Shown here: positions 15,969 through 43,479 of the stretch, in pieces
How the letters are laid out: each line of letters opens with the position of its first letter
Position numbering within the stretch: position 1 is the stretch's first letter
Origin: Octopus sinensis
Lineage: Eukaryota
Direction: 5' to 3'
Length of the DNA: 64,000 nucleotides
NCBI RefSeq assembly: GCF_006345805.1
Contig: NW_021832840.1
Coordinates: 1-64,000, forward strand
Position numbers and translations under genes: made by a program
Notes under the pieces: model-generated
The model's database searches: none
What the model saw: the letters and a program-made list of their open reading frames with translations, nothing else
Told to the model about the DNA's origin: nothing

Positions 15969-15993
15969 CGTATTGCCAATTTGAAGTTGGTGT

Positions 15994-18519: not shown

Positions 18520-20150
18520 TAGACCGTTACAGTAAAAATACGACTAATAAATTTAAGAAAGAATATAATTGGATTGTTTGGTTATCCTCTATAAAAGCGA
18601 AATGGGAGATTGACAGGTGCTGATTTGAGAAACCAAGTTTTCAAACGCCTTGTCTCAAATAAATAAGATGGTGATTAAAAAAATAATAAAAAAGCAGCAA
18701 TCCAAACAGTAAATAATAGAATAAAACACTGAGAAATCACCACAGATTAATTTCAAAAGTCTCGTCGTTATCGAGCAGTCCCGGAACGTTAGAATGTGCC
18801 ATTTTTTATTCTCGTATGCTCTTTCATCTGTTCAGAAAACTTCTCCAAATAGAGATCCTGAACCAGAGAAGAGGAGGATGAACGGGAGACGTGGAGAACA
18901 CAATTGATCCAATTCCTAACTCGCTTTTGTCAAAAACTTATCTAGTAGAGGGTTAGGGAGTTGTGTGTCCTTAATTAAGGTAAAGTGATAAAAGTAAAAA
19001 ATCACAAAGAAATGTACAGTCAGTCCAAATTTGTTAATGTAGGTGACCATAAAACTTTCGAATTGTCCTCAAAAATGGCATTAGTCAACCTAGGTATCAA
19101 ACAGCAAGGTAATTAATTTTTACTTTCTTCTAGGTTTGAGACATAGCTACTCCCAATAACCGTCAGAAAAGAACGACTTGAGTTAAAGGAACAGAAGAAC
19201 ACCATTGTCCAAAACATATCCAATGGAAAAAAGAAACTCCAAGAATTTGAAGATAAAATTTTGATGTTGTCCGAATAATATACAAATAGGCTCTCAAATG
19301 AAACTGAAAGATCTATATTGGATGACGAAAACCTTATGGAGACTCTTAAATCTATCGAAGTGACTAACCAACTCAACGTAGCCCAACAGACCGAAGAAAA
19401 ATCGATGCCATCAGAGAGGTAAAGTTCCAGCTCTATACTTAAACGTCACTAAATGGGTTATTTAGAGTGCGCACAAGGAGGTTCAATTTTATTTTTTATT
19501 GTGAATGAACAGGGTAAGGTAAATGAGATGTATAAATATTGGATGGAATGTTATATTAAGATTTTCAAGTATTCTATAGAGAAAAGTTTCAGATCCTCAA
19601 AGCTTGACAAAATGCAGGTGAGTGTGACAATGCCCGCAATGACTTACAGAAAATGCTGATTATACGGCCAATCCGTCCGGACCGCGTCCCAATATGTGTG
19701 GCGTCGTTTGTAACGAATAATTTTGGGTCGAAGTACGTCAAGCCTCCTCTTCTTAACATACAAGACGTTTTCATCGAATCTCATCCACAAACTCTTTTAA
19801 TTTTCATCTTTTCTCCCGGAGTTATTGGTCGTGTTTGAATAACTCACTAATCTAGTACCCGACTCAGGCAATCTTATAGATCGCCATAAAATAAAACATG
19901 GCAAAAAGTTTCCCTTTCTCTAGTACAAGGACAGTCCTCCATTGCCAACAGAATGATCTGAGACGACATTAGAGAAGTTAGGTAAATTCTATAATTAAAG
20001 GAGCACTGGATATTCCTGCCCAATTGACACTTATTACTTTGTTGAATGCAAAATTGGCCACTTTTATTTTAAGTCTTCAAAGTCTCCACCAACAACGAAG
20101 ACTGGTCTGACTTTTCCTACCAACATGACAGTTAAAGTTAGTTAATAGCA
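18520..20150 (+). pseudogene. DNAH2: Decayed axonemal dynein heavy chain (DNAH2-like) fragment, AAA5-AAA6 region
   Basis: Segments IDPIPNSLLSK, VNLGIKQQG, LLPITVRKERLELKEQK, SILDDENLMETL, CAQGGSILFF, MLIIRPIRPDRV...FSPGV, QGQSSIANRMI, HWIFLPN follow DNAH2 order. In-frame TAG/TGA, frameshifts, an internal deletion near 19620, and 21-25-nt introns. Confidence 0.82.
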
Positions 20151-20184
20151 CTTCCGCGTTGCCATAAGCATAAAAATGAAAAAA

Positions 20185-20264
20185 TTTCAGACCTCCATTT
20201 TCAGGGAAACCTCCATTTTTGGGGCAATTTTTCAAAATTGATGCCCCAAATGGAGGTTATACTG
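20185..20264. mobile_element. pogo/Tigger-like right end
   Basis: ...GGAGGTTATACTG|TA terminus with a long subterminal hairpin. Confidence 0.5.
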
Positions 20265-21980
20265 TATCTAATTGTAAAAAAATGTCGATATTATTCATCG
20301 CAGAGAAGCAATTATGCCATTTCAGTCGCTGTGCTCGCGGAAACTACTTTTCAATACGCAGCCCTAAGTTGTTGAGCTGACCCGTAACAATAAAAAATAG
20401 TAATTTATAAAATCAGCATTATTTTTGACTCATTCAAATTGATGTAAGGTTTAATTTTAACTTTATGAAATATAATTCAAAATAAAAAGGTTATTTGATT
20501 AGTTTGGCTATTGGCGGATACACTATAGCTAGAGATTCTCCTTCAGCTAAATTCCTGTGTTATTTGTAACAAAATTCTGTTTTATAATATTTTTAATAAT
20601 ATTAATGTTAAAAAATAAGCAATATTTGCTGGTTAACGTATAAAATCGAATAAAATATTAATTTTTAAATAATTAGTTCATTTAGGGTGCCACAAAATGT
20701 CATGCGGCATGCCAATTTTACGTCACTAAAACATATTTTAACTTTTTTTCAAAAGCCATCTCGTCATCAGACCGTAAAATAACTTATTTTTATAGCTAAA
20801 TAGAGTTTTCAGAATGAACGGAGAGTTGGAAAATTGGCGTTCTGAGTCTCAGAGATTAATGCACTTGTTAATATTCTTTCGTAATTATAATTGATTTCAT
20901 AATTTTTCTTTCCTTTTTAAAATCTCAAAAAATGCTTTAGTTTCTAATTTTTTAGTATTTTTGATTTTACTGTAAAGTCTTGTCTATTAGGGTAACTTCA
21001 AAGGATCCGTTTATAACAGCTTGATTTCTTCTTTCCTCGTATTCTTTTTTGACATTTTCCAAAATCTTACTAAGCGACAGATTTTTATGTTTATTTTTTT
21101 ATTTAATTTGATTGATTTTTGTAAAACAGTTTACTATCTGTATTATATGATCGAATAATGTCAATTTTTTTCTTTTGTGTTTGTAATTTTTTAACTAATT
21201 AGTTTTGTTCGTAACTGATATCAATAACTGATATCAACTGATATCAATTACTGTCATAAATTTTTGTCAATAATTTTATTCTCAGACATATTGATATTAA
21301 TGTGGTCTATTCCAGTGATTCTCAAGTTTGCGGCCTTGGATTCAATTGTGGCCCCTTGGTAAACTCTTAGTTTTTCTCTTTTAATATAAATAAATTTAAT
21401 TTTAATTAAGAATGTTTACTTTTCAATTTTTCATTAATGAAATGACCATTAAAATTTCAGATGGTGTTTGGTAAAAACTTTATCCCAACAATTGATAATA
21501 GTCGCTTTTTTCATAAATTTTTATTTTTTGGATTTAGATGTAATTGTTAGTGGTTATTTGAGTAGTTTTACTATCATTTTTCACGCAACTTATAAATGAG
21601 ACTAATACCGTTTTGCATAAAGATGACTTACACCAACTACCTCTTTGGCTTATTGACAAATTTCTCTAACCATTTTGGGGGGAATTTGGATTTGATATTA
21701 AGAATGTCTCCTCAGAGAAATATGAGTTTTAATTCATTTTCGCTATTATGTAACATCTATCAAGATCTGATTTTTTAGGAATATAAAAACTGTAAAAAGT
21801 AAAAATAAAATTTTGAACACTGAAAATGAGGGTATTTTAAAGCAAGGAAAATAATTTTTATCTTAGCTTGTTACAAAAATACTCATATCTAACTAGTAAA
21901 AGATCCCTCAATAAAATTAATATATCAGTCCACTTTATAGTCAAATACATTGTCATACAAACATATAAAATGTACATGTA

Positions 21981-24072
21981 TCAAACGCAAGTATCACATT
22001 TTGACTTGTTAGAATATGACTTGCTTTTTGATGGAATCGCCCCCGGAGAAGTAACTTCAACAATCATTTCATCCCCCGTCAGTGAAGTACCACAACTATT
22101 CTCAACAATATCTCCCGTCTTCTGCCTCTTGGCCGAACTCTCATCAGGAGGCTACAGTCACGCCAACAACCTTACCATCCAGTGAAGACACTCCTCATGA
22201 ACCATCACATCCTCAACCACTCTATTCTCCCAGTCCAACGACAACATTGTCCTTTCTAATAAACCACCTAGACTGACTACTTTTCATCATGAATAGTGAG
22301 GATCCCTAGATTCTGCAACGTGGCTGCAATGTCGTGTGTTGACATTCCTAAATCGTCACTCAACACTGGCAATAAAATCTGGTTGTACCCTTAATCGTGA
22401 TCGACTTTGAATCAGCTAGAGAAAGTCTTCTAATCACACTTGACTTCCAATATGCCATATAAGCAGCCCGCCCGTGTTCAGTAAGTGGTTTCTCTGGGGA
22501 GCCAGTCTTCCCTTCTCTCCGTGACAGAGCATAGCTCAATTCGATCAAAAAACGTCCAAATCCACGACGTTGAAAAACCGGGAGAACCATGATACATGAT
22601 AAATTATAGTTATGTCCGCTGTTCTTTTCTTTCGAGAAATACCCCACAAAGTCCCCTTCGACGGAAGCACTCTGAGGGCGAAGAATCATCACGTAGAACA
22701 TGAAAGGTTCAACATCGTAATAAAGAGTTTTGTGCAGCAAAAACAAGCGTGACAACAAACAGAGATTTTGGCAGTAAATTTTGTCATTGTTTCCATCAAC
22801 TTCAAACACTGCAATATTTCCGTGACGGTAAATCTCATTTCCAGGCGGGAAAGTCATTTGACACACAGCCTGACAGTCAAAATTAGTCAATAACCTCATG
22901 TCTTGCTAAAATTTTTGCGGTCTTCATATAAACGAGACACTTTGAACACAAAAATAACCGCGAAAGGCTATTCCGTGATCTTAGAGTAGTACCTGGAGAA
23001 CTCCTGGGGATACGGAGAAGAGTGCCAGGCTGGAATTTCATGAGGACCAATAATAATTCGGGGAGTGGAAGCTTCTGACTTGGAAGGCTCATCTTCGTCC
23101 AAATTGGAATTTTCCGTAAAAACAGTATCGAGTGAAGAGAGGTGTGCCATCTTGAATATCTCACGGTCTTCCGCGGTGATGTACTCCGGCTGCCCTGTCA
23201 TCATGAGGGTTGTCTCAATCACTGCAGTAATCTCAAGACCAAAACAACCACTGGAGTCATTTTTTGTATTCCGACGGGATTTGATTTTTTGAGGACATTT
23301 CCCACATCTCCAAGTCTCAATTTGCTCGCTAAACTCAGGCACATTGACAGAGCACTCAGAATGGTCTACCAACATTATAAACAAGAGAAACATATCATCC
23401 CACAGTCAGTGCACTGAAGAACTAGGCTGTTGGAGGAAGGGTTGATCAAATCCTTACAGACGGGACAGATCAAAGGAATTTAACATTCTTAAACTAAAGA
23501 GGATTGAAATACCTTAACGTTGTAGGTCATGTACTGATAAGTGGGTATTTCTGTGACTAACTAAGTGGTTTAATCAAAGAAGACTACTTTAACGTGTTTG
23601 TCTGGCAACATAATTATGAGATTCTGAGAGACGGCCTGGGCAATTGCCTCGTCTAAATATTTTTCCAAAGTCGCGTTTTTTGGGAGTGATATGTCATAAG
23701 TGAGGGTGATGTGTTGGAGGATTGTTGAAACTGAAATTAACGGGAAATTTGGGAAATTGAGTTCTTGAATAAACTCGGGGACCAGAGGAGTCAAGTCAGT
23801 CACACAAGATATATTTATTTTCCGTTTTTTCCGATTTCGTAATACTTCTGAAGTAATAAAAACGAATCGGCCATTGACTATTAAACGAGAAACTTTTCCG
23901 ATTCTTATTGATTTCATTAAAAGAAAGTAAAAATCAGATATTTTCAACTGCGTATTTAGTTAACAAAATGTACGTTTTTGTTTATAGAGGTGACCTTTTG
24001 GGATAGTCGGTAGAACTCCGGGAGACGATTTATTTTTACTAGTGAGTTTATGGAATCCAAAATGACGTCCAT
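21981..24072 (-). CDS. KAT6: KAT6 (MOZ/MORF/enok)-like MYST histone acetyltransferase: WH1-WH2(H15)-PHD-MYST, 10 exons
   Basis: Introns 23948-23973, 23561-23587, 23488-23512, 23366-23391, 22968-22992, 22870-22894, 22366-22388, 22252-22280 and 22152-22175 (23-29 nt, GT-AG) restore PHD CPVC..CTDCGMIYHSEC..WRCGKC and MYST (WHSSPYP, C2HC finger, NLSCI, QRRGFG, SPEKPL, EECLHW). One 1-nt frameshift near 23480. Confidence 0.9.
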
Positions 24073-24289
24073 TGGCCAAGAATCAAATATTGCTCATTTA
24101 CCACAAGAATTGGATAATAAAATACAATTATATATAATACAAATAATTATATTTTTTAATATATAGTTTCTGATTTTTATAATATTAAGTAAATTCTTAT
24201 TATAAAATACAAGCATAAATTATGTACTAAAGAATTGAAAAAATGATAAATTGGGAATGAAATTATCAGTCATGTGAGGATCCTAAGCA

Positions 24290-25235
24290 GCCTACGATTA
24301 TTTCAAGTCTACCAAAAAGAGCTGGATAGCTCATGTAGGCACCTATGCTAGTCGATGCTTAGACATCTCGAAGGCTCTCGACAGCGTTTGACACCGAGAC
24401 CTGCTGGAAAGGATCCAACTCTGTAAACCACCGGAAGAGGTCTTTTTGTGGTACAGTGCTTCCTCTCAAACCGTTGCTCTTTCGTTTCCGAATCGGGCTA
24501 TCGCTCCAGGAACATCAAACTCCTCAGGGGGGTGCTGCAAAGGTCCTACCTCAGTCTACTTTTCTTCAATTTGGTTATGAGCAATTGCCCTTTTCCCCCG
24601 ACCCCCGGACAACTTTGGTTTTATATGACGTCCTCGTCCTAGACATCTCAAAGGACGCGAAGACTTCAGAAAGAAGGCTTGCCAACTACATTGAGATGAT
24701 AAAGAAGTGGTGCGCCAATAAGCGGCTCTCGCTAGGAATGAACCGCTTACCTCTGAATCAACACGAAAAAGTCGCCAGATCAAAGTCCCGGGCCCTTAGC
24801 TGAAATTGACCGCCCCAGCTGCATATGTTATTTGGAGCTTACAATTGACGCTAATCCGGGTTAGTGTCTGCGTGTCAAGGAAAAGAGAGCGAAAGCCATC
24901 GGCTCCTATGAAGAATGCATCTGGACCCAAGGACTTTCCTCTTCATGTTCCACGCAACCATCCTAGCTTGCTGTAGAAAATGGGAGCGTGGTTCTACTCG
25001 AAATATTTCGAGAAAATTAACAGGAAATGCAAAAAAATCCGACGCTATACGCTGAAGCTAGCTTACAGACTTGACCCACGAGGCCCGGTCCCAAGCTGGG
25101 CGGAGACCAAGTCCTCGGAGATACGGCAGGTCATTGAGAAATCTATCCAGTCTTTCCGGAAACGATCTCAAGTGACCGACCTATTGAGACCGGTAACCGC
25201 CTAGCCTGCTCCAGACAGCAAATAAACGTTTCCTC
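24290..25235 (+). mobile_element. Degenerate LINE RT remnant (L2/Jockey-like)
   Basis: LDISKALDSV, CFLSNR, GVLQRSYLSLLFFN; eroded YADD. Confidence 0.65.
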
Positions 25236-25652
25236 TGAAGAGTTCAACTGACTAGAGCAGCCGTCTCGTTGTATCAGACGTCAAAAATTTCTGTCACTGT
25301 TTCTGTTTTTTTACAATAAATTGGATTACTTTACTTAATAGTCGATGAATTATAAATTGTTTTACGATATGTTCCAAGTAGGTAATAAAGTGAATTACAT
25401 CAAATTTTTTTTATCTCATACAGTCAACACTCTTCATAGTGAAACCGTTCTATAGTGAACAGGCCCTATTAAAGCAATCTACAATAACAAATATTAGTAA
25501 TTCTCATTATTCAGAATGTACATATGTTTATTTAAATATTTTGGTGTTCACTATTAAAGAATAGTGGACGTCAAATTTTTGTGAACATAAAAATATTAAA
25601 TTTAATATTTTTACATATTATTATTTACTCCACATCCGCAACAACAAGAAAG

Positions 25653-26760
25653 TTACAATCTCCTCGGCGTTTGTCCCACACCCTGTAAGATTTTGTCTGT
25701 TAGACACCTCCACGCTTTTCTTGAGATTGCGATTTTTCGGAGGCTGTCTAGATCGTCTGTATTTTCTAGTAGCAATCCGACATGCTTAAGGTCGTTATTT
25801 AAGATTAGTGGTGGTGTTGTCCTTGGCCTGCCTCGAGAAATACCAGAGCATTGAAAGTATGTTTCCATGATGTCATTGGGAGGAACTAAGAAATCCATCC
25901 GTAGTATGTGGCCGAAGAGTCCCCATCGGCTCTTAGTGATAATTGCATTGAATTGTTCTGTTCTAAAAACGGAGTATAAGTCTTAGTTCTTGATCTTCAC
26001 TGGATAGTGTATTTTCAATAATGATCTGAGTTGTTTTCTGTGAAAAGCATCGAGATTTTCTACAAATTTCTGGTTCAGTCCCCCATGTTCCTAAGTTGTA
26101 TAGTAAAATGGGCAGGATGAAAGCATTTTACAAACGTACTTTTACGGGATTTGTGAGATGGGTGTAGCTTAGCCATATCGATTTAAGCCTCTTCAGTGGT
26201 AACAGTATCTTTCTTCGTTGGACATCTTCCCAATCACCAAGCAGTGGCCCGATTTTTCTTGATCCCCTCCATATCTCGTCAGTAACTTTACTTTCTCGTT
26301 TAACTGCAATGAACTCAGTCTTTTGTTCGTTCATTTTCAAAAACCACTTTCCAGATACTTCAGGAGCGTAGTCAAGTGCAATTCTGATATCATTCATTTC
26401 TTCTAAAACAAATTCTATGTCGTCCGCATATATTAATTCTATGATACTGGTTGGGCAAATTTTAGCTCTCAGATCACAAAGAAGAGCTCCCAGATAGATG
26501 AAGAATAAGATCGGAGATAAGGAGTCACCTTGTGAAGTGCCAATGTGTTTTTTGAATTTACGAGAGTGCTCCGAGCCAACCCACACTTCCAGATCAGCGT
26601 ATAACTGATGAGCGAGTGAGTTTGGTGAGTATTTTAAAAGTTCTCCATTCATACCATCAGTACCCGGACTCCTATTATTCTTCAATTACCGCAGAGCAGT
26701 TTGTATCTCAGTGATGGTGTTTGGAACAGTTAAGCTTCTAGGATCGTCAACAAACTGAAA
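25653..26760 (-). mobile_element. RTE-clade remnant with internal deletion
   Basis: GTSQGDSLSPILF, YADD, GRPRTT; related to 6397-8214. Confidence 0.82.
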
Positions 26761-29239: not shown

Positions 29240-30100
29240 CTTCTAGTTTTTTTCTAATTTTATTAAGAGCCTTGTTTAGAAGAACAAGGAGAGTGACTCA
29301 AAGTCTTTCTTTGAAAGATGTTTTGTTTTCATTGTCAAAGTAATTGTCTATTGTAATGTTGGCGGGAATGTTTATGTCAATTCAAAGTACATGACCAAAT
29401 AGCCTCCATCTTGATTCGATAATTTCAGTGCTTATTGGATCCGATAATTTCATAGAGTACAATTTCTTGTTGGAAATCTTTGTTGGCCAATCTAGGCCAA
29501 GTAAATTGTGTAATAGCTTTCGATAAAATGTGTCTATTTTCTTGAGTTCTAACTCTGTGACTCTCCATGTACCCGAGTTGTAGACAAGTACGGTTTTATA
29601 TACAAGTTGTATAACCTTATTCAGAGCTTTGTTTTTATTAGCTTTGGTCGACTTGCATTTTCTTATACATTGGACTGGATAGCACCATTCTATATATCAT
29701 GCTATCATAAAGTAGCGATCTCAGTTTCCTTTTTTTCCTTTAGTTTTCATCAATATGGTTTAATTCCCTTTTAATTCCTTTGTGTTTGGTCTTTTCTTCA
29801 TTAACATGTAGGGACCAATTCTTAAATTCGTTGGGAATTTTTCTAAAAACAAGTTCAAATTCCAAATACTTTTCTGACTCAAAGTCTATGTCATCTGCAT
29901 ATATAATGATCCGCCACATGCCAGGTCCTCCACATTTAGTTCTGAGAGCTCTCTTTGAGGCTTCCCCGTATACGATGAATAAAACCCTGAGGTGTTCCAA
30001 CCGTAGTCGTGAAAAGCATCAATGTCATATTCCTAAGCCGTACAGTTTATTCAGTACTAGATAAAAGAAAACGGATCAACCATGTATTATCTTCATCCAG
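29240..30100 (-). mobile_element. RTE-clade remnant
   Basis: IIYADDIDF...WSLHVNEEKT; related to the other RTE copies. Confidence 0.7.
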
Positions 30101-30157
30101 AAAACTTCAAAATTCTATTAAATTCTATTAACTAACTAAAATACTTAAATCATTAAT

Positions 30158-30350
30158 TGTGACCGGTTGAATACGAGCCCAGGTTGAATACGAGCCGTTA
30201 AAGTGGCGTTAATGCCGTTAAATCATATTAGGGTTAGGGTTAGGGGTTAGGGTCTGTTTTCTTTAGTGTCATTTTTATGATGAATCTGTTTATAAATAAC
30301 GTTGAAATCATTTATAGTTAGAGTTAAAGTTAAGGTTAGAGTTAAAGTTG
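30158..30350 (+). mobile_element. Ginger-like left terminus containing telomeric (TTAGGG)4
   Basis: TGTGACCGGTT start (compare TGTCACCGGTT at 58777), tandem GGTTGAATACGAGCC x2, TTAGGG x4 at 30228-30252 and degenerate TTAGAG/TTAAGG hexamers at about 30317-30347. Confidence 0.55.
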
Positions 30351-30589
30351 TTACAAACTTGCCAAAAAATTTAATGTAAATTATAATCTGCTAATGTTGC
30401 AATTTATAATATCAAAAATAAAAAATAATTCACATTATAATTTGCTAATGTTGTAAAGAATTTTACTGGAAAAAAGTTAATTTTCATGTTTATCTACTAT
30501 TTATTTTTATCTTAAATGATACATATTTTTTTTAAATAGAAGGTAATATTTTGAAACGAAAGAAATTGTTAAGGACAATAAGAAGAAGA

Positions 30590-32930
30590 ACTGATGGCGA
30601 TCCTGTTTCCCCTCACTATTGCTTGGGACACGTTCTCTTACGGAGGACTATTCATTCTAAATTATTGGAAGGGGGAATACGCTCGGCTTTGAGAGTGCTC
30701 TCCAGTGATAGTCCATTCCTGAAGCCTTCAATTGAGACTCATGAAGCTCTCCTGGATCGACATCCGGCCGCTCCAAGCGACTCACGAAATCCTCCAGGGA
30801 TTCTTCAGCCATTGTCTGTCTCGGACGATGACATTAAAGCCGGAATTTTATCCTTCGCTCCAAGCAGTGGGGCGGGTCTAGACGGGCTGCGACCAGGACA
30901 TCTTAAGGGCCTAATCTCGCCGGACACTGGAAACTCGGGATCACGGCTTCTTTCGTCGATCTGCTCTCTTATCAACAGAATGCTTTCGGGAGATCTTCCA
31001 GAGCTAGTCCGTCACTTTTTCTTCTCTGCAAAACTGATCGCGCTAGAAAAGAAAGGAGGTGGTGTTCGACCCATTGCAGTTGGATCTGTCTTCCGTCGGC
31101 TAGCTTCAAAGATGGCATGCAGGGCTGTTATCCCAACATTAACCCCGCTAATGTGCCCTATTCAACTTGGAGTTGGTACCCCAGGAGGTTGTGAAGCTGC
31201 AATACACGGAATCCGTGCATTCAACCACATAAACAACAATACCCCACATATTATTGTTAAATTGGACATCCGTAATGCATTTAACACCATTCGCCGCGAC
31301 TCTATATTGGAGAACTGCTTTGAATTTTGTCCCGAAATATACAACTATGTACTCAGCTCATACGCAAAACCATCCACCCTCGTCCATGGCCCTTACCATA
31401 TTTCCTCATCCTCGGGGGTTCAACAAGGAGACCCATTGGGCCCTGTTCTCTTTTGCCTTGGAATTAATCACATTGCTAAGAGCTGTTCAACCCCGCTGAA
31501 TGTTTGGTACCTTGATGACTGCACCCTCGGAGGTCATCCCGAAACTGTCTTCAAGGCGCTCGTTGACCTAATTCCAAGACTTGAATGCGTTGGTCTCATA
31601 CTGAACACTTCAAAAAGTGAAATCATTAATTTTGGGTTCCGTCGTGATGAATTCGAGGTTATTGTTTCTTCTTTCAGTGAGATAATTCCCGGAGCGTCCA
31701 TCACGCCTAGTATCAGTGTGGAGATATTAGGCTGCCCATTGACAGATGGTGGAATCAAGGATGCTCTTGAAACTAAGGAAATGCTACTGGAAAAGACTTT
31801 TGTTCGTCTTAATTTGTTGGACCCACATACAGCCTTCTTCCTGCTCAAAAATTCCCTTGGCATCCAAAAATTAAATCATGTGCTACGAGGGTCACTCTGC
31901 TTCTTAGAAAATGATCAACTTCATTCTATTAACGTCCTTTTCCGGAAAACAACTGAACGCATCATAAACATCAAATTCGACGATCAAGGCTGGAAACAAG
32001 CTTCCCTTCCTGTCTCCTTTGGAGGTCTTGGCATCCGAAATCCTACCGATGTGTCCCGCCCTGCATTCCTGTCTTCACTGTACAGCAGTCAAACTCTGGT
32101 TCAGAAGATTCTCCATCTCCTCCCCGAATCTTCAATACCTAAGATGACTGCCTACTTTGACAGTTGGAGCGCAAACGAATCGAAGCTGCCGCCGGACTTC
32201 TCCTTACAGAAGAGTTATGACAAGATTGTGTGCGAAGGTCGGTTCGAGAGTCTCCTAAAGACATCGAATCAACACCGTAGAGCATGCTTGCTTGCCGGGA
32301 GGTCCACGGGGAGTGGAGAATGGTTGGAAGCCTTCCCAATCGGAAGCTTGGGGACTCTCTTGGATTCTGACACACTGCGAGTTGGTATCTGTCTACGTAT
32401 CGGTCTCAAAGTTTGTTGGACACCACCCTCTTTCCTGTCGAAAAAGCGCTGGTAGATTCCCGAGGCATTCAGCTCTCAACGACGTTATAAGAAGAGCTCT
32501 CGATTCAATCGGATTCCCATCAGTGCTGGAACCACCTGGATTGGACCGAGGAGATGGAAAACGCCCAGACGGGATGACTATCTTTCCGTTTTTGGAAGGA
32601 AAGCCTCTCGTATGGGATTCAACATGTTCCGACTCCTTGTCCAAGACAAACATGTTGGAAAGTGCCTGCAATGCTGGCACAGCTGCGGATAAAGCAGAGG
32701 ACATCAAGAAGAAGAAATATGATGGGCTCACCGATCGTTACGTTTTCTAGCCGGTTGCTGTCGAAACCCTGGGATCGATTGGGAACGAGTCGTTGTGCTT
32801 TCTCAAGAGTATTGCACGTCTCAAGACCTTGAAAACACACAATCCTCTGGAGACGAGATGGCTCCTCCAGAACGTGTCCCAAGCAATAGTGAGGGGAAAC
32901 AATGATACATATTAATCTTTACTTATCAAA
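30590..32930 (+). mobile_element. CRE-clade non-LTR retrotransposon (RT + RLE), longest copy, with frameshift/deletion near 32410 and stop at 32748
   Basis: KLIALEKKGGGVRPIAVG, QLGVGTPGGCEA, LDIRNAFN, GVQQGDPLGP, WYLDD; RHSALN..GKRPDG..VWD RLE motifs. Confidence 0.9.
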
Positions 32931-33826
32931 TAAAGTTGTCTGAATGTCATTTTTATTTGTTTTTTATCAGTCAAATGTAGACAGATGAATTGGATTCTAG
33001 TACTGCTATTTGTTACTGTTTTTTTCTAAATAACGTTCAATATGTAAAGTTTCTTATAACTTTCAATTTACCTATTTTTATTATAATTTTGACACAAAAA
33101 ATTCTAGAACTCCGGCATTCTCAACTAGATCAAAGCGCTTATCCATTCACAGCATGTAATTACCAAGTATATTGTCAAAAAATAATAATCGTGTTCATCA
33201 AAAAAACAAGATAAAAAGAAAAAACTTTTTAAAACTCTTTCCTGAGGATTTTACTTCCAAGGATTTAGGAAATTTTAGGTCTTTGATATCTTTAGACTCA
33301 CATGACCGAGATTTCAATATGTACTATGGAATCATTATTTGCTTTTTGAAATTGTTTTGCTTTTATTTCTTTTACCTAAACATAAATAAAATCTAATTAT
33401 AGATAAATAAAACTTGTCAATTCCAGCTGACTCAATCAATTACAAACCTTTAAATTGGCTAGCCGACTTAAAAACTAATTAAAAATTGATTTTTACAGTT
33501 TAAAACATTGATTGTTTGATTTTTTCTCTGTTATATGATTTCTATCTACACAGCCTGTACTTCGCGTTTAGTTATTTTAATACAAAAAATATCTAATCTG
33601 AGCACAATCTATTTGTTTTTTTAGATTTTACATTAGGTGCTTTAGATGAATCACATTGCAGTCTAATTGAGTTCGAGATGTATTTTGAAATGCCAGTACT
33701 GACTAGTATTTATTTTAAAAAAGTACCTAATTAATAGTACTTGTGATTATTATCAAAAATGCAATGTATTCCTCACATATGTCGTTAAATCGATGACCGT
33801 AACCGTAAAAAGACAATAAAATTTAG

Positions 33827-35540
33827 TTTGCGACGCCTAACAATTCATTCATGCCTTTCTCGGTCACAAATTCTTTTACAAACTCAGCAAATTGTGACAA
33901 TTTAAACTCAAAACTCAAACCTAAGGAATATAAAATTTTGTTTTGCCCAGGTGGGATCTCCTTAAAGGTACTACAATTTTCCTAATTGGCATATTTTAAT
34001 ACAAAATTTGGAAGAAATTAAGTTTTATCTGTAATTTGTACTATAAAGCTCTTTGTTATTAAATGTTCAAATTTATGTTTTTTTAACAATAATGCGACTT
34101 TTATCTGGGCTATTAATCATATATCAAAGTTAGTCAGACAATAAATAATCGAATTTAATGCTAATTCGTTTTATTATAAAGTATCATAATTGGTTGGATT
34201 TGGGAAATGTGTTATCTGGTGAGAGTATTTCAAATGTGGTTAGTCATCTGAAATCTTCAAAGGTTTGCCGATTGATTTAAATTCTTAGAAAAGTGAGAAT
34301 GCCAAAAATGTGACTTTGATATTGTCAGATCAAGCGATCGAAATTTATGATAGATTTTTTAAAGTTAAATAATAAATTTAATTCTGACAGAAATGTTATC
34401 TTCGACTTTTTTTCCAAAATATTTCTTTTGTCATCTGCGCTACACACGAAAAAAAGGTTGCAATCATTGAAAAAAGCCAATTACAAAAAACACATTTTCA
34501 CAGTTTTGCTCATATTTTATCTACGGAAAAACAAGAAGAGGTTGTGTTCACAGCATGTGCCTGTGTAGTCTGTATTTAATTCTAAAAATTACTAATTAGT
34601 AACATTTGGTACTTTGTTATAATTAAATTCTAATTATAGACAAATCTAATTATTTTTAGACACTTTTGCTAAATGATACGCTCCAGGCCATTATTGAAAA
34701 AAGCGATCAAAGTGCTGGACAAAATAACGTAATTGTTGATAAATATAACAATTAGAGTCTCAAATCCAAAGACACGTGTGGTCCTCGGAGTATTGCAAGT
34801 GATTTGGCCGAAAATCTAACACCGTAAGATTATAAATAACACATTTGTAGTAGTTCTTCTTATTCACTGAAGAAGTATATGCAAGAACATTCAACATTTC
34901 TCAGAACCAGACAAAAAATTAAATCAGTAGTAAAATCTGACTTGCAAACTGATGCAGAGGCATTTGTTTTTGTTCCTATGGTATACAATCCAGAATATTT
35001 TTCGTAGAAAACGGATGATTGTCGTCCGACTCATTTCTCCCCTTCCGTTCAAAAAATTAAAAATTTCACGAGACATGGTGAAAGTAATTTTCAAAATTTG
35101 TCAATATTTAAGAATATAAAAACGATAGTGGAATTGGTACAAGTTTTTGCAGTTTTAAAAATGAACAAAAAGACGTAACTGCGATCAATCCGCTGACTGA
35201 TTTTACTAGTTGGAACCACCCCGAGTTCACTCGGTGTAATTTTTTCATTTTTGATTCCCAGAGAAGACGCCGAAAAACATTTGGTCTTTCGTCGAGTTGG
35301 ATGTTTTATCATAAGAAATTCAACTACATGGAAAGGCTGTTTTGTTATGTCTGTGCTACAATGTGAGGAGCATCAGACAGTTGGCCACTACCTTATCAAA
35401 AAAGACCGGCATGGAAGAGTTTATTTTGACGTATAGTTGTTCTGATATTATTTTAGGGACACCAAGAAACATGGGAAAATATAGAAACTCTTGTAGCGAG
35501 CCTACAAATTCCACTTATAAGATTTTTTAGATCAGATTAA
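33827..35540 (+). CDS. SHC: Shc-like adaptor (PTB - linker - SH2), many micro-introns; 5' end uncertain
   Basis: Introns 34263-34288, 34364-34390, 34729-34755, 34824-34850, 34981-35007, 35084-35112, 35234-35261 and 35431-35456 (26-29 nt) give a PTB-like VTLILSDQAIEIYD...QNISFV, a YKND motif, and SH2 WNHPEFTREDAE..GCFIIRNS..VMSV..HYLI..WENIETLV. Junctions at 33968-34181 and 34572-34659 are unresolved. Confidence 0.75.
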
Positions 35541-35722
35541 TAATTTTTTATAAATTCATATTCTTTAATAAATATTTCTTTTTTATATTTCTATCCTCAT
35601 TTACACCTTTCTATAATTAGCAACAAATTTATGTTCCTAAATATTAGTTTATAAAAAAAATCATTCAGTTTTTAAAATTTTATTTTTTATAAACATTTCT
35701 AGTTTCTACAGTAATTGGTTAA

Positions 35723-36481
35723 ATGTCTGATGACGACGCATTCCCAAATATATCTATTCCCACTCCACACTTTCTAGATTCGCCATATTTTGAAGAATCG
35801 TTTGAAAATGAAAGCAGTGATACTCTTCTTGAACTTTCATCAGCTCTCTCTTCAGAAGAAATCCCCATTGAGCATTTACCAAGTCCACAGCCACAATTGG
35901 AAATGATAAAAGACCATTCCACGATTCTTTCTACAACAAGCTTTGATTCGACTGCAAAAACTGAAATAGATTTACCTCCAGAAGATCTTTTGATCAATCC
36001 CCAGTCCAACGCAATATCCCTTCTAATAAAAAACGAGATTAATAAACTCGAAAACAACTCAGAATACATCGAAATTACTAAATCAGTTGAACAGCTCATA
36101 GATCAGAAAGTAATTTTTATTTTTTAAAAATAGGCATCCACATGTCTTAACCTAAGAGGTCCCCGTTACTCTAACCTGACTAAAATTGAAGTCTCCTCTC
36201 TGGAAGTTTTAGACAATGAAAAACAAAATAAATTCAATTTCAAAAACTCAAATTCAGTAAGTTGTTAACTTTTGTAAATAAAATTTATATTTTGATTATT
36301 AAAATTAATTTAGAATCGTGAAAAAATCGCGGAACCAGGTTTAATGGATTTTTTCAGTGAAGATTTTCAATTCCGTGAGTTAGCTGATCCTCACGTACAA
36401 CTAGTTAAGGCTGAACCAAAACAAAAAAATTGCACAATTTCAAATTTGACAATGATTTATAAACACTTCAATAATTTTTAG
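35723..36481 (+). CDS. Orphan acidic/Ser-rich protein, at least 3 exons
   Basis: ORF 35723 continues in frame across GT-AG introns 36110-36133 (24 nt) and 36257-36313 (57 nt); no recognisable domain. Confidence 0.55.
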
Positions 36482-36689
36482 TAATTTTTTAAATATTTTT
36501 GTTCTATTTTTTTAACAAATCAACAATTAGTGGAAGTTATAGATTATCACGGAAGATGTAAATGTGAGGATTTTTTTCTATTTAAAGTAATTTTGATATT
36601 TCATGTTTGTGTGTTTTTGTTTAAAATTAACGAATCATCTATTCTAACGGTAAAAGATTTCGATTTTTTTCATAATTTTGTAACCCTTG

Positions 36690-38283
36690 CCTTCTAGTCA
36701 AACTGGACCTGATTAACGCCTTTAACAGCGTTCGTCGGGACGTAATATTTGAATCTATTATCCGGAGTTCACCTTTTATTGCCCGCCTGGTCGCTTTGTC
36801 CTACGGTCGCCCCAGCCTCCTTATCGCTGGCGATCATTCAATCTCGTCCTGCAACGGTTTCCAACAAGGCGACCCTCTGGGTCCTCTTCTCTTTGCCCTG
36901 GCAATTGATCCAGTTGCCAGAAGTGTATCCTCCCTTTTCAATGCGTGGTATTTGGACGATGCCACTATCGGAGGTACTCTCGAATCCGTTCTTGCCGACC
37001 TGAGAGTTTTAATCCCTGCATTACACGCAACCCTAACCTCGAAATCAATCCCCCAATCTTTAACATCAGTTATGATGCCCACCGTTTCTCCGTTGTCCAT
37101 GGTTCTATAGAGTCATTACTTCCCAACATCCATGTCACCTCGCCCAGCAATCTCAAGATTTTGGGTTCCCCGATTTTTAACACCGATGTCGTTTCGACAT
37201 TGTCAGAAAAGACATCAAACCTTGTGTCAATGTCCCGTAATCTTGGTATCATCGACTCCCGTTCGGCCCTGTTTCTATTGAGGAACTGTTTCGCCATTCC
37301 CAAACTATTGTTTACACTTAGAAGGGCTCCATGGTTTGCCAGTCCCGAGAGCCTCTCCAGATTAGACCATGCTCTCAGGACTTGCTTCGAATCAATATGT
37401 AATGCCCCCTTTGACGATCTTGGCTGGGAACAGCCAACGCTCCCCATCAGTCGCGACAGCATCGGTGTGCGCTCAACCACTGACCTTTCTTTGCTAGCAT
37501 TTCTTTCTTCTACACATGCCACGAGCACCCTTGTCCATGAGATTCTCCAACCCGTTACCAAATCTTCTATGGACTCAGAGTCAGTCGCCACAGAAAGTCG
37601 CTGGCTTGGGTTGTCTCTTGAGCTTCCGCAGAATACACACGCACAGGACGAATGAGACAGGATTCTCTGTGATCAGAAGTCGAACAACCTCATCAAACCT
37701 AAGCTTAACCAACATCGCTTGCCCTGTTTATTGGCTGCCTCGCAACCATATTCGGGGGCTTTGTTGACCGCCATCCCAATGGGATCTATTGGAAACTTAT
37801 TGAACGACGATTGCCTGAGGATCGGCGTCTCATTGCGCCTGGGACTAAACGTATGCAGAGAACACCGGTACCGCTGAGGATCGACCGTTGACCCATTTGG
37901 ATTGCACCCATTATCGTGCCAGAGAAGCTCCGGACGCTTTCCCCGACACACTGCCCTGAACGACATAGTTAAGCGGACCCTTGAAACTGCCGGATTCCCA
38001 ACACAGTTGGAACCGGTCGGCCTGGTTCGGGAGGATGGTAAACGTCCTGACGGCCTAACGACTTTCTCTTTCGAAAATGGCAAGTCGCTCATCTGGGACG
38101 CAACTTGCACGGACACCTTCTCCGCAGAAAACATCTTTACGTCAGCCGCAGAGCCGGGCTCCGCAGCTAGCCTGGCCGAAACGCTAAAAATCAAGAAATA
38201 CAAAACGCATATCGCTTTTCCAACGCATATCAATAGCCATCTTGCGTGGGAATTGCCATTCAATCTTATCCTCTGCTGTTAAT
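36690..38283 (+). mobile_element. CRE-like retrotransposon, 5'-truncated, degenerate
   Basis: GFQQGDPLGPLLF, WYLDD, RLE GKRPDG..IWDATC; stops and frameshifts. Confidence 0.88.
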
Positions 38284-38419
38284 TAAATACTAAATAACAG
38301 ATTCTTTAATAGTAATTTGAACAAAAAATTATTAATGAAAAAAAATTGCAAAACTCTTCTAAAAGGGCAGAATATTTCAATTTATTATAATTTTTTTTTC
38401 ATAAAAAAATCAATTATTA

Positions 38420-38660
38420 ATTAGCGTTATGTGCCAGCGGCAAGGACGCTTTGTGCTTTGCCGCGAACGATTACCAGACCGATGCGCTGGCGGAACGAGA
38501 GGCCCTCTCTCTGGTCCTTAAGTCTCCTCCCAATGGACTGCCCGACCTCGTTGAGGAACGATTCGGTATCCTTTCCCGCGGGTCCAGCAGTCTCCAAGGC
38601 GATTGGTGTAAAACGGTAGCGGTCCGCGAGAGAAAACTATTTTTGTAGTTTTATCTTTTC
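38420..38660 (-). mobile_element. CRE-like 3' fragment
   Basis: RYRFTPIALETAG...RQRIGLVIVRG. Confidence 0.8.
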
Positions 38661-39930
38661 GGCGTAGTTTCATATTATTAAAACCAAAAAGAATAAAATT
38701 GAAATGTGAGAATTTTTTGTTTAAAATAATTTTGATATTTTATGTTTGTGTATTTTTGTTATAAAATTAACGAATCTTCTCTTCTAACGATTTAATAGTA
38801 ATTTGAAAAAAAAATTTATTAAGGAAAAAAAATTGTAAGATGATTAGGTATGGACGCGGCCTTGTCGGCACCCACACGTGGCAATTTAACATGCTTTGGG
38901 ATTATAAGTACTACTCTTTCACATTTTCAGGACGGAAACCCAAAACGTTAACTGCATCAACTTCCTCCAAAACCAAAAACTCGACATTTTTATGCACAAA
39001 AAACACGGAATAGATCCAACGAAATTTGGAACGCTGATAATCAGTTCTGGCCTTGTTCTCAACCAAAGAAACGTTTTTATCGGATTTCACTGGTACCCAT
39101 TTTATTGTAAGATATTGATTTTTCCATAAAATTAATGAATCATCTCTTTTAACGATGAAAGATATTGATTTTTCCATAATTTTGATCCCTGAATTAATTG
39201 TAGGATCTTGAGGGTGGGTAATGTATAGCTGATGTAAATGTAGGAATTTATGTTTAAAGAAATTTTGATATTTTCTGTTTGTCTGTTTTTTGATAAAATT
39301 ATGTATTGAAAAATGAAAATTGTTTTGTTAGAACTATTCTTTTATTTTGGAAATGTTTCAATATTTGATATTTTTATTTTCTGGAAATACAAGTTTCTCA
39401 AATCCGTTTATATATATCATCTAAACTAAAAATCGATGAACGCTGTTTTGTCTAAATTAAATTTTTCTTATTACTTCCTTCCTATTTATATACAATCTAT
39501 AAATAACAAATAAACTGCAGTTTAATTAAATTTTAATTAATTCGGACTAAAATGTAAAACTGCATTAATTATGATCCACCATTATTAACTAGCAATTTTT
39601 TTATCAATTATTTATCCAAAACTATTTAAAATAGTGAAACCACTTTACAATAAAAGTTTTAAAAGCTATTTATAGCAATTCTATGGAAGATTTTCTTTCT
39701 ATATGGGTGAATAGAGATGATTATGGGAATTTTTTATTACTGTATAAAGATTACTGTATTAACTCAACATTTAAATTTAATGTAAAATTATACTTGTTTC
39801 CCAAAAAATTTGGGCTGTTCAACAAAAGCATAAAGCCTCTAAAACCGATGTTTATAGTCTGTTTATCCAAATATGAAGGATTGACTAATATATACAGTCT
39901 GCAAAGAGATAAAACAATTTTTTAAATAAT

Positions 39931-42203
39931 TTAATGCAACAAATCATGGAAGGTGACCCCCACATTCGTGCTCAACTCAATATTCTCAGGGTATACAAAC
40001 AATCCGTGATTGGGTGGGCAATGAAAGTAAACAATTCCATCGACCACCCCGTCGGTATCCCCCTTCTCACTCTCCAACTCAATTCCCACCCGACATTGAT
40101 CCCCCTCATGTGTCCTCCCCACATATCGAACAATTCCACGCAATCCCCCATTCTTCAGTTGGACATATCGACCACTCGTCAACCACCAAGGCAAAGATGT
40201 ACACTCCCCCTCCTCTCCCTGATCTGACCATACATCTCCCAATTCATCCAACCCTCCCAAAGCGTCCTCTTCACTCTCTTCAGGAGAAGGAGGGACAATA
40301 GGAGCAACAGTAGGGGGACTGGGTTGTTCTACCGGCTGACTCGGAGTTGTTGGTTGGAATGAGGAAGTAATACTTTTGCAGAATGAACCAAGACGGTTGA
40401 TGAGAGTAGAAGAGAATGTGTGGAGTGGGGAGTTCTGAGGGGTTTCTGCTTGTCTTATCTACAAATAAGAGGACAGGTCAACCTGATATTGTTTGTCCTG
40501 TTGGACTAGGTCGATCACGGATTGTAAAGTTAAACATTCGTGGGGAAGACTTCTCCCTCCATTCAATTGAAGGAAGAAACCCAAGAATGCTTGTTGGGGA
40601 AAGGAGTACTAAAATATCCCCAAAATAATACTCGAGGAATGCTAAATTCAACAATATTTCCCCATTTTTGAAACAGCGGGCACATCAAAGAATGGAAGTA
40701 AGTCGAATGGATTATTCCCACATCAAGTGTCACGTTTTCTCCATAGAAAGGAGACTCCCACTTGACCGATTTAAGCTGAGATAAAAGAGGAGTGTTACTG
40801 TAAAAATATTGCCGAGGTAGTTGTCCCACCGGTCGAAAGTATGGTCGTCCCGTTTAATTGAGATGTGGCAGTGACCCAAAGGCATTCCACAATGGCCAAT
40901 GACCTGTGCAGAGAGACTGTCCCTCTCGTACAGACAATCGGCGAAAATTAAGCATGTCCCAAACACCTTCTGACACAATTGGGGTATCAATCCAAGAGGA
41001 ATGGACTGTCCGGGAGTCCAACCGACATAGGGTGGTGGAATACATTTGGAAAACGAAGAAAGTCTTAATAATAGGCGAGTAAAATATTCAGGAAGTGACT
41101 GGAGAGGAATCGGGAGGTATTCAAGCATATCAGCATAACTGAGGGGCTCATCCACACAGAAAAAATGCTGATCAGCAATAGAAAGGACATCCCCACGGCG
41201 AAGAGGAGTGGGGGAGGAAATAGGCCTCTTATTAATAGTGATATAACTAATGTGCCCAGACAAAACTACCCGAATGACTCCACCATCAGTCCCTCTTCAC
41301 AATATATTCGACAATGGGGGGACTCGATCCCCTTCCCTCCCAAAAAAAGAGTGTGTGCTGAGTATGGGACTTGTTCTCCGGTAGGGTAAACCAACAAATA
41401 TGTCTGGGAGTAAAAAAGAGACCATACGTCGATTTGAAGAAAAGATTCACTAGAAAATGGGAAGAGACAATGAGGAGTGTGTCTCCTTTCTGGAAGGACG
41501 ATGTGTCGATAAGAGTAGTACCGAGTTCTGTCGAGAGAAGGGGAATGGATGATTTGGTTATCTCGCAAAAGAACTGTCCATGACCACTTTCCCGAAAAAC
41601 AGCGGACATTTCTCATAAGAATATTCCCAAAAAGAGTCTAGAATATAATTTTAATGATACCCTCCACACTTTTCTCAACTCGACAGTCACCTGCAAGTGA
41701 CGAATAGCCCTCCCTACATCGCCCAACATACACTCCTCCTTCCTGATCAAGCCTTCCATCACCTCAATTTCAGACATTCTCAACAATGTCACTTTCGGAG
41801 AGGACGTGGCCACTGACTGGAGTAGACTAGGAATTATACTTTGTGACTAATTGTCCGATGTAGAGTTATCACTGTGGTTATGTTCACCACTCCACTCTCC
41901 ATCAAAAACATTCCTTTCCTCCACTCAATGTGACTCATTATGTCACCCCACGTGTCAGAATCCACAGAGACTGTACCTCGACTGTCATTGCGAGTGCCGA
42001 GCATGTCGATTAGTTTGTGTTCTTGAGAAGTGATTCCACAACAAGACAGTTCAACATGTCCACCCACTGTAGTAAGCAGACGTTTGGCTGTATTATCAAA
42101 TACAGTTCTTTGAGTTGTATCTAGACTGTCAATATGCGCAACCACCGTTTATGAGTAGTATCACGTCCTCCTCCTTCCACAATTTTGCTGACAATTGTTC
42201 CAT
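39931..42203 (-). CDS. KIF13: Miniature KIF13/Khc-73-like protein (FHA, stalk segments, C-terminal CAP-Gly) with no intact motor motifs
   Basis: Introns 41817-41839, 41638-41660, 41404-41427 and 41247-41269 (23-24 nt). FHA GGKGIESPHC..INKRPISSPTPLRRGDVLSIADQHFF; FGTCLIFADCLY..LGHCHISI stalk motif; CAP-Gly PWWL..GIVRYVG..VGIEL..DG..YF.C..HGLFV. Middle exons (40260-40830) not fully resolved. Confidence 0.68.
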
Positions 42204-43479
42204 CACATGAACAGATATTTCAATAACGACTATTTATTGTATATAAATTTTTTCATTAAAATTTTATTGTTCAACAAAAGTTAAGGAAAAATCATTTTTG
42301 TGCAAAAATATTGGTTTATAGTCGTTGATTTTTGCATGCTCGTCTTAATCGCGGAATGCCGGGTATGCGACCGAAATATTATGTATAAATAAAAATATTT
42401 TTTCAAAAAGAAAGTTTAATAATTAATAAAAACACCCCTAGTTAATTAGATTCGATAAGCATTAATGCATTCTTTTATTCTATTCAAGATAATTAAACTG
42501 CAATTGTTTTGTTATTTATAAATTGAATATCAGCAGGAAGTCTATAAAAGTAAGAAATCGAATTAATTTAATCAAATGACCTTACATTCCAGATACCTTC
42601 ATTCCGTGGTTTTGTTCAATTACATTCTCTCAGGAGTCTTTTTCAGCACAAATGATTGGATGTGTATCTTTGCTGCTTTTCTAATCAATTGAATTATCTG
42701 TAATTGAGAGTCGTATAGAAACAAAAGCACACTTTTCATCAAACCATACTTTTGATAGTTTTCAAATTCCACCTACTTGAAGCAATCTTGTAAAGTACTA
42801 TGCACTTAACTCCTTGGCTCCTCCTGTCTGAAGAACTATATCTTTCCAAATTTCTTTAAAATGACATGCATCGATAAAGTTATTAAGCACCACTCATGGC
42901 TGTTAACTCAGTCGGCGGATATAAAAAGAAAACTTTGACAATCTCAAATGGAGTCTAACAATACTGAATGATTCATCGAGAAACACGAGGACCCTCTCAG
43001 GGTGACGGATAGGCCTACGTCGCCGAATTTAACACTTTGCTCTTTATCACTTTCACTTAATGCTGATTGGTAAGTCTTTTACAAAACAAGAAGAGACCAC
43101 AATCCGCTTTTGTTAGGATCAAAAGGATGTTAACACCAAATGAGTTCCTAATTGATAAAATTAAAATGCTGCAAACTAGCTACGGTTCCAAGAAATCTAA
43201 ATTAAAGAATTTTTATCTGGATAACTTCAGCTTTCTGGACAAGGTTATCAGCTACTTTGCGAAAATAATTCTGGAGGCAAAATCAAGGGCTATACCCAAA
43301 CTTCAATTAAATTCTGAGAGTGGTTGATAAAGGTCTGTCTTAGTCAAAAAAAATTATCTTAAGACATTTGATATAAAGTTTTATATCAGCACATTAAATA
43401 CTTATTTTTTTTATTTAACCCAAGGATCAACAACAGTTAATATCACATAAAAAGTATAAAAATCCGATATATTAGCCTC

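Follow-up and report, generated by a model that had tools for sequence, protein, structure and literature searches.

Minimal GT-AG introns in a contig of the Octopus sinensis assembly that very probably derives from a dicyemid mesozoan

We analysed a 64,000-nucleotide (nt) stretch of DNA deposited as Octopus sinensis, hereafter the window, and found that all five gene loci curated in it are interrupted by GT-AG introns, most of them only 20-29 nt long. The window corresponds to bases 1-64000 of the unplaced contig VCDQ01009166.1 (95,692 bp), with coordinates identical to those of the record, and the contig belongs to GCA_006345805.1, the chromosome-scale O. sinensis assembly of Li et al. 2020 (PMC10700109). 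The DNA is eukaryotic and its content of guanine plus cytosine (GC) is 35.2%. We consider it very likely that the window is nuclear DNA of a dicyemid mesozoan, either Dicyema japonicum or a co-infecting relative, which became part of the octopus assembly. The loci carrying the tiny introns lie at 18.7-20.0, 22.0-24.1, 33.9-35.5, 35.7-36.5 and 39.9-42.2 kb, occupy together ~8 kb of the 64 kb, and are each compact (0.8-2.3 kb):

18749..20036, plus strand: dynein heavy-chain relic (AAA5 / AAA_9 region), with Pfam AAA_9 in the spliced model
21981..24072, minus strand: KAT6 (MOZ/MORF-type MYST histone acetyltransferase), 620 amino acids (aa), 10 exons
33851..35540, plus strand: SH2-domain adaptor gene, 407 aa, 12 exons
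35723..36481, plus strand: orphan gene, an ATG-started open reading frame (ORF), 3 exons
39931..42203, minus strand: gene with FHA and CAP-Gly domains (gene 4), 7 exons

The intron catalogue and its tests

The loci were curated by three-frame reading, all GT-AG solutions of 15-130 nt were enumerated for each junction between flanking frames, and the spliced models were compared with Pfam profiles and PDB sequences. This procedure yielded a catalogue of 32 GT-AG introns in the five loci, the first at 18952 and the last at 42142, each of the 32 segments starting with GT and ending in AG. Their median length is 26 nt and their mean 31.9 nt. The great majority (27/32, or 84%) fall within 20-29 nt, a short class of 25.4 +/- 2.5 nt, and the longer introns measure 32, 49, 57, 81 (or 72) and 119 (or 116, or 54+44) nt. 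A first-pass annotation, prepared from the letters of the window, had proposed about 25 GT-AG introns of 21-29 nt, and 26/32 catalogued introns, at the coordinates it gave, are of this size. Its counts for individual loci agree with ours for KAT6 (9/9) and for the SH2-domain gene (eight short introns), and were too low for gene 4 (six introns, not four) and for dynein (at least four, not two). For the orphan gene, the one short intron it counted (24 nt in our catalogue) and its 57-nt exception were both reproduced, giving two introns in total; the exceptions to the short class are otherwise more numerous than it had listed (32, 49, 57, 81 and 119 nt).

Ten introns are anchored by homology to KAT6A or to the PHD, zf-MYST, MOZ_SAS, SH2 and AAA_9 domains, in that excising 23-28 nt produces ungapped matches. 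Each anchored junction offered only 1-6 GT-AG solutions (15-130 nt), and the one that fitted the homologue was always 23-28 nt long. The exact restoration of conserved domains claimed by the first-pass annotation thus holds for these ten by Pfam or PDB alignment, and the remaining 22 introns were placed on the basis of reading-frame continuity; with the anchored ones they have in common a GTA start, a YAG end and 29-31% GC. The short ones among the latter (n = 17) bear the same signature as the anchored introns, which we evaluated against 148 decoys, i.e., GT(N)AG strings of 20-29 nt that occur unused within exons of the same genes:

A at +3: anchored 6/10 (p = 5e-4); frame-only short 11/17 (p = 2e-6); decoys 16/148
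C/T at -3: anchored 10/10 (p = 2e-5); frame-only short 14/17 (p = 8e-5); decoys 47/148
GC: anchored 0.32 (p = 2e-4); frame-only short 0.31 (p = 2e-5); decoys 0.45

As the frame-only short introns share the signature of the anchored ones relative to the decoys, the two sets belong to the same class. Among the 27 short introns, 17 start with GTA, with little conserved beyond this triplet, and 24 carry C/T at -3; the region upstream of the AG consists of A- and T-rich columns without a fixed motif. Introns with a length divisible by 3 expose an in-frame stop if retained in 11/11 cases (determined by script and by eye), a sample too small and too AT-rich to infer selection.

When the longest spliced ORF was sought by naive dynamic programming (introns of 15-80 nt, then of 20-29 nt), the outcome was dropped as evidence, since the search yielded long GT-AG chains on both strands and in transposons, and picked wrong sites in real genes. 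Chance GT-AG paths are thus found everywhere in the window, and frame continuity alone proves nothing. It is conceivable, on these grounds, that the short segments are not introns at all, but GT..AG strings that arose by chance, or short insertions that disrupt genes no longer alive. Indeed, 20-29-nt paths can be threaded almost anywhere in the window, decay is obvious in the dynein locus, and bridging is needed at four frameshifts. Nevertheless, exact removal gives ungapped alignment of conserved domains at ten junctions, the boundaries are all GT...AG, the composition and splice-site signature are absent from the exon decoys, and KAT6 is intact over 620 codons apart from one frame correction. 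We therefore regard the non-intron explanation as practically negligible and the short segments as almost certainly real introns, whose excision from RNA we infer from genomic DNA.

The four 1-nt frameshifts lie at 23475-23487 (KAT6), 19138-19153 and 19393-19409 (dynein), and 41283-41300 (gene 4), and homopolymer runs hold three of the four corrections. In the simplest reading they are probably long-read indel errors in a poorly polished contig of a low-depth contaminant, although some may be genuine mutations.

The five intron-bearing loci

The gene at 21981..24072 was confirmed by sequence comparison as KAT6, the identity assigned to it in the first-pass annotation. Its best solved relative is the MYST domain of human KAT6A (2rc4; E = 1e-83), with scores of 285 bits for KAT6A, 265 for KAT7 and ~242 for KAT5 and KAT8, and the KAT6A alignment runs without gaps across the junctions at residues 325, 350, 510 and 564. 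On the minus strand at 22250-23500, the MYST zinc finger and catalytic domain are split by GT...AG segments of 25, 25 and 23 nt. Splicing extends the MOZ_SAS match from positions 1-152 in a single exon (225 bits) to 1-178 of 180 (249 bits), and the zf-MYST match from 6-28 (21 bits) to 6-55 of 55 (55 bits). Joining the exons on either side of the 26-nt intron 4 yields a full-length PHD finger (1-47 of 47; residues 177-225) and restores the C-x2-C-x4-H-x2-C spacing; Pfam detected one PHD only in the spliced model, not a tandem (double) PHD finger. The exon with the first Cys pair of the PHD finger (23451-23512, minus strand) is preceded by in-frame TAA codons, and no GT-AG intron of 15-130 nt reaches it without a frame correction. 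The KAT6 introns, all on the minus strand, are as follows in gene order:

23948..23973: intron 1, 26 nt; frame continuity, with a 17-nt alternative
23561..23587: intron 2, 27 or 24 nt; frame continuity, multiple of 3 with in-frame TAA
23488..23512: intron 3, 25 nt, uncertain; works only if an A is added to the run at 23475-23487
23366..23391: intron 4, 26 nt; within the Pfam PHD match, alternatives of 17 and 38 nt
22968..22992: intron 5, 25 nt; within zf-MYST, KAT6A alignment ungapped at residue 325
22870..22894: intron 6, 25 nt; sole GT-AG solution, ungapped at residue 350
22366..22388: intron 7, 23 nt; joining extends MOZ_SAS, ungapped at residue 510
22252..22280: intron 8, 29 nt; frame continuity, in a poorly conserved stretch
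22152..22175: intron 9, 24 nt; 'ECLHWM/PP' (junction at the slash) ungapped against KAT6A 'ECLRWTP'

If intron 9 were retained, an in-frame TGA would be read. The spacing at intron 1 may match that of the KAT6A N-terminal domain. The protein is strongly divergent: the nearest relative of the MYST domain is 58-63% identical, and nothing among 5.8 billion proteins exceeds 63%. A neighbour-joining tree of the domain gave only a long, unplaced branch.

In the SH2-domain gene, Pfam SH2 was matched at positions 1-74 of 77 (E = 2.8e-11; residues 317-393 of 407). The gene had initially been described as Shc-like, which our comparisons do not confirm, as the best PDB matches are Csk-, Src- and Crk-type SH2 domains and no PID/PTB domain was detected in Pfam (E <= 0.1) or PDB (E <= 1). 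Any resemblance to a PTB domain was seen only by eye. Eight introns of 26-29 nt stand beside three much longer and very AT-rich ones (~20% GC), and the long introns might hide micro-exons, such as the 6-codon exon in the 54+44 solution. The eleven introns, all on the plus strand, are in order:

33968..34048: 81 or 72 nt; frame continuity, 4 paths, AT-rich
34133..34181: 49 nt; sole GT-AG path between the flanking frames
34263..34288: 26 nt; frame continuity and intron signature
34364..34390: 27 nt; frame continuity, in-frame TAA
34541..34659: 119 nt (or 116, or 54+44 with a micro-exon); 8 paths, single-intron minimum 88 nt
34729..34755: 27 nt; frame continuity, in-frame stop
34824..34850: 27 nt; frame continuity, in-frame stop
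34981..35007: 27 nt; frame continuity, in-frame stop
35100..35128: 29 nt; frame continuity
35234..35261: 28 nt; within SH2, ungapped through 'WNHPEFT/RED' (junction at the slash), alternative of 37 nt
35431..35456: 26 nt; within the SH2 match, PDB SH2 alignments ungapped, alternative of 38 nt

An antisense ORF (33826-33981) lies opposite exon 1 of this gene.

The dynein assignment also stands, as AAA_9 was matched at positions 49-218 of 222 (E = 1.7e-21) across introns of 28, 25 and 24 nt, with the qualification that the locus is a decayed relic. Besides the frameshifts at 19138-19153 and in the A-run at 19393-19409, a TGA replaces the conserved Cys of 'LQNCHL' (20019-20036), and ~200-300 internal residues appeared by eye to be missing. 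With two frameshifts, the TGA and the large gap, no intact dynein frame could be followed through AAA5 and AAA6. The locus has the appearance of a pseudogene or of a gene that was poorly assembled. At least four introns were placed in it, all on the plus strand:

18952..18979: 28 nt; within AAA_9, the upstream exon extends the match to position 49
19109..19133: 25 nt; within AAA_9, also needs the 1-nt frameshift at 19138-19153
19266..19289: 24 nt; within AAA_9, 2 solutions (24 or 21 nt), TAA if retained
19618..19649: candidate, 32 nt; frame continuity, joins blocks that lie far apart in intact dyneins

Gene 4 had been called KIF13-like, and two of the domains behind this name were recovered: CAP_GLY (E = 7e-19) and, only after bridging the 1-nt frameshift at 41283-41300, FHA (E = 1.3e-4; 22.7 bits, with a cut-off of 20.7). 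The sole FHA-type match among solved structures is KIF1B (2eh0), which is weak (E = 0.18). A kinesin motor was not found: the spliced models gave no Pfam kinesin match, and the 1.1 kb upstream of the gene, to which Pfam was not applied, contains no motor-like reading frame by eye. When single exons of gene 4 were compared with Pfam before splicing and bridging, nothing was detected. Region 41270-41640 contains three long overlapping ORFs, two of which merge into the FHA domain when one G is added to a GGG run; this case, together with the others, suggests homopolymer indel errors in the contig. We dropped the frame-2 'HFLVNL' (41640-41300) as the start of the FHA domain, as frame 1 with the bridged G-run gave the Pfam FHA match. 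For the 188-aa segment at 40733-41296 in the large exon, no homologue was found among 1.84 billion representatives; its lone match, to a bacterial Ig-repeat, was judged spurious. The six introns, all on the minus strand, are in gene order:

42121..42142: 22 or 25 nt; 2 paths, a weak PDZ-like alignment spans the junction
41817..41839: 23 nt; frame continuity, 2 paths
41638..41660: 23 nt; frame continuity, 4 paths
40776..40798: 23 nt; sole GT-AG path
40590..40609: 20 nt, uncertain; one among many paths
40459..40482: 24 or 21 nt; frame continuity, several paths

Gene 4 opens with a PDZ-like match (4r2z; E = 0.03), which was set aside as Pfam gives no confirmation. Upstream of the ATG, at 42204-42420 on the minus strand, a frame reads 'YKPIFLHKNDFSLTF' and can be joined to the gene via a 46-nt GT-AG segment. 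This peptide could represent the first strands of the weak PDZ-like region, and there is no start codon there; the 5' end of gene 4 may thus lie beyond 42203.

The orphan gene gave zero Pfam matches and no homologue among 5.8 billion proteins. Its exon 1 (35723-36127, plus strand) lies opposite an antisense ORF of 126 aa that starts with ATG (35719-36099, minus strand), and the plus strand was preferred solely because two intron-like segments continue the frame downstream:

36110..36133, plus strand: 24 nt; frame continuity, GTAA...ATAG ends, in-frame TAA
36257..36313, plus strand: 57 nt; frame continuity, GTAAGT...TTTAG ends

The source of the contig

The mini-intron genes alternate five times along the window with long interspersed nuclear elements (LINE), Tc1 elements and BED-finger elements. 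As such alternation is impossible from a single chimeric join, the transposons and the mini-intron genes belong to one genome. The repeats comprise at least 4 RVT_1 ORFs, a Tc3-type transposase domain, a BED finger and two satellites, and the following reverse-transcriptase ORFs are among them:

6400-8244, minus strand: reverse-transcriptase ORF, Pfam RVT_1, E = 7e-34
8335-10002, plus strand: reverse-transcriptase ORF, Pfam RVT_1, E = 2e-20
30536..32452, plus strand: LINE-type reverse-transcriptase ORF between KAT6 and the SH2-domain gene

The LINE ORF at 30536..32452 has a single 95% relative, the RefSeq uncharacterized protein 'LOC115227355 [Octopus sinensis]' on the unplaced contig VCDQ01005081.1, with 93.7% nucleotide identity across 2.3 kb; no match labelled as another octopus species was present among the 120 matches listed. 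Three repeat families are common to the window (30230-32900 and 51049-51430) and VCDQ01005081.1 (668 kb; 318310-340187), at 86-94% nucleotide identity. In 22 kb near relatives of the transposons on three other contigs of the assembly, we encountered transposon sequence throughout and zero host genes in which mini-introns could be tested. One satellite consists of 17 copies of a 94-bp unit, 96% identical, and the other of arrays with 12 and 29 copies of a 20-bp unit (14356-15972 and 52018-53102). A tRNA-Met (CAT) gene at 11556-11628 on the minus strand lies amid transposon remnants and was the sole match when the window was scanned with Rfam for small nuclear RNA genes. Among public contigs, only VCDQ01009166.1 itself is recorded as carrying the MYST-exon ORF (22360-22899, minus strand).

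These properties fit what has been published on dicyemids. Dicyemid introns were reported to measure 26.2 +/- 1.9 nt (PMC2222250), or to have a median of 27 nt with two thirds below 30 nt (PMC6543705), to be compared with the median of 26 nt and the 84% within 20-29 nt in the window. Likewise, the dicyemid 5' splice site is reduced to 'GTa' (PMC13644364), which agrees with GTA in 17/27 and a pyrimidine before AG in 24/27 of our short introns. The genome of D. japonicum has a mean intron of 38 bp, 48.9% repeats, many LINE ORF2 copies and a GC content of 36.7% (PMC6736024); the window, at 35.2%, is similar in composition and is also repeat- and LINE-rich. Dicyemid proteins are reported to be very divergent (PMC2222250), as is the KAT6 of the window. 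Finally, the specimens for the D. japonicum reference genome came from the renal sac of O. sinensis (PMC6736024), the very species in whose assembly the contig resides, which supports the suspicion of parasite contamination that the first-pass annotation had raised for the case of a host-animal assembly. We see no difference in kind between the introns of the window and dicyemid mini-introns; the window needs four 1-nt frame corrections.

If the window is of dicyemid origin, the following picture would emerge. The dicyemid would have come from the renal sacs of O. sinensis, its DNA being co-assembled with that of the octopus as an unplaced contig. Its U2-type GT-AG introns would have shrunk to a minimal class with a mode of 23-27 nt, leaving a minority of 32-119 nt, and would presumably be recognised by intron definition with little information. 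The cues would be GT usually followed by A, a pyrimidine before AG, and AT-rich introns against GC-richer exons, and the branch point would probably be one or more A residues. Only the introns are minimal, not the genome as a whole, as the intergenic spacers are taken up by satellites and by remnants of LINE, Tc1/mariner and BED-finger/hAT elements. The decoupling of intron shrinkage from genome compaction noted in the first-pass annotation is seen here and was already published for D. japonicum (PMC6736024).

Several points weigh against a dicyemid source. No match to bona fide Dicyema was obtained, in collections that seem to contain no dicyemid data: a search of transcript-derived proteins with the MYST exon returned its own genomic ORF only, a chimeric query that combined the lineage-specific portions of four genes gave zero matches among 5.8 billion proteins, and the nearest Logan match came from unrelated runs. 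Intron excision is deduced from genomic DNA. The four frameshifts and one in-frame TGA indicate that the sequence or the genes are imperfect, and five introns are clearly longer than the 20-29-nt class. The 668-kb contig VCDQ01005081.1, with which the window has repeats in common, may be parasite or octopus. Lastly, introns of this size, reduced splice sites and a high repeat content are also features of myxobolid myxozoans (PMC13644364).

The last point makes another animal parasite with ultra-short introns, either a myxobolid-like myxozoan or an undescribed lineage, the rival that deserves most attention. Myxobolids are parasites of fish and annelids and are not known from octopuses, and the cephalopod myxozoans on record belong to Kudoa. 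In myxobolids (Henneguya, Thelohanellus and Myxobolus), the median intron is 22-27 nt with the same GTa/AG signals in highly repetitive genomes of parasitic animals (PMC13644364, 2026), all of which resembles the window, and the lack of a direct Dicyema match leaves room for such a source. However, these parasites are cnidarians, their shortest peak is at 22 nt as opposed to 23-27 nt in the window, and extreme shortening is confined to myxobolids, the introns of Kudoidae being longer (PMC13644364). The GC content of the window (35%) is also nearer to the 36.7% of D. japonicum than to the 29% of Henneguya, and the record is an octopus assembly of a documented dicyemid host (PMC6736024). We thus judge a myxozoan or undescribed source to be improbable. 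The statement in the first-pass annotation that introns of this size are known among animals from dicyemids is correct as published, and since 2026 myxobolids have to be added as a second group: among 51 animal genomes surveyed, introns below 30 nt occur only in D. japonicum and myxobolid myxozoans (PMC13644364). This distribution also speaks against the contig being genuine octopus DNA, with tiny introns of the octopus itself or with parasite genes transferred into the host. The contig was deposited as O. sinensis, and the transposon ORF on its sister contig is a RefSeq O. sinensis gene. Nevertheless, the contig is unplaced and only 96 kb long, all five loci in 24 kb carry mini-introns, and the LINE family lacks a labelled match in other octopuses among those listed. 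No animal KAT6 exceeds 63% identity to the KAT6 catalytic domain of the window, which is far more divergent than expected of a mollusc orthologue. An octopus origin is thus highly improbable in our opinion.

Outside animals, a ciliate of cephalopod renal organs (Chromidina-like) could be considered. In Paramecium, introns with a length that is a multiple of 3 carry in-frame stops, as in the window. The length class is also similar, with introns of 20-35 nt (mean 24.8) in Paramecium (cited in PMC2222250) and of 15-16 nt in Stentor, and a ciliate code would read through the two in-frame TAA before the KAT6 PHD finger. Nevertheless, TAA and TAG are reassigned in ciliates, whereas the window uses the standard genetic code: 25/25 Gln codons are CAA or CAG, and 667 homology-supported codons contain 0 TAA/TAG, which argues against a ciliate source. 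Moreover, two genes terminate with TAA and one with TAG, and exact alignment requires the removal of TAA-bearing introns such as the 24-nt dynein intron. The gene content and domain architecture are of animal type (KAT6 with PHD and MYST; an SH2 adaptor), and an expressed ciliate macronucleus would not be expected to carry so dense a load of LINE and Tc1 elements. We hold a ciliate to be even less probable than an octopus origin. The nucleomorph of Bigelowiella natans, with introns of 18-21 nt, shows a comparably extreme and uniform shortening of GT-AG introns, but its genome is tiny and essentially repeat-free, unlike the transposon-filled spacers of the window.

Meaning for dicyemid introns and the octopus assembly

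Animal introns of 20-29 nt, and tiny introns in a repeat-rich genome, are already established for dicyemids by work of 2007-2019. Mini-introns have been reported for D. japonicum, D. acuticephalum and Dicyema sp. (Aruga 2007, PMC2222250; Ogino 2010; Lu 2019, PMC6736024; Zverkov 2019, PMC6543705). The new element is that the contig sits unrecognised in the O. sinensis assembly and its annotation, and further parasite contigs are probably present in the same assembly. It is attractive to speculate that the assembly and RefSeq hide a substantial long-read dicyemid genome, made up of the 96-kb contig and maybe of others of 650-670 kb, maybe from a species other than D. japonicum, with LINE families maybe shared with the host by horizontal transfer; we regard this larger scenario as unlikely.

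A cephalopod reference that contains parasite contigs has practical consequences, as RefSeq names such ORFs octopus genes (LOC115227355 may be an example), and mislabelled contigs can mislead cephalopod studies on transposons, gene families and horizontal transfer. Genes of this kind are shattered by predictors that accept no intron shorter than ~30 nt; the MYST exon, for instance, is recorded as a separate 179-aa ORF product. On the other hand, contaminant contigs would provide long-read data at no cost for a phylum of which very few genomes are available. The curated set of introns may also provide clean examples for studying how a spliceosome locates introns of 25 nt, as the real introns differ from the exon decoys mainly in the A at +3, the pyrimidine at -3 and the AT content.

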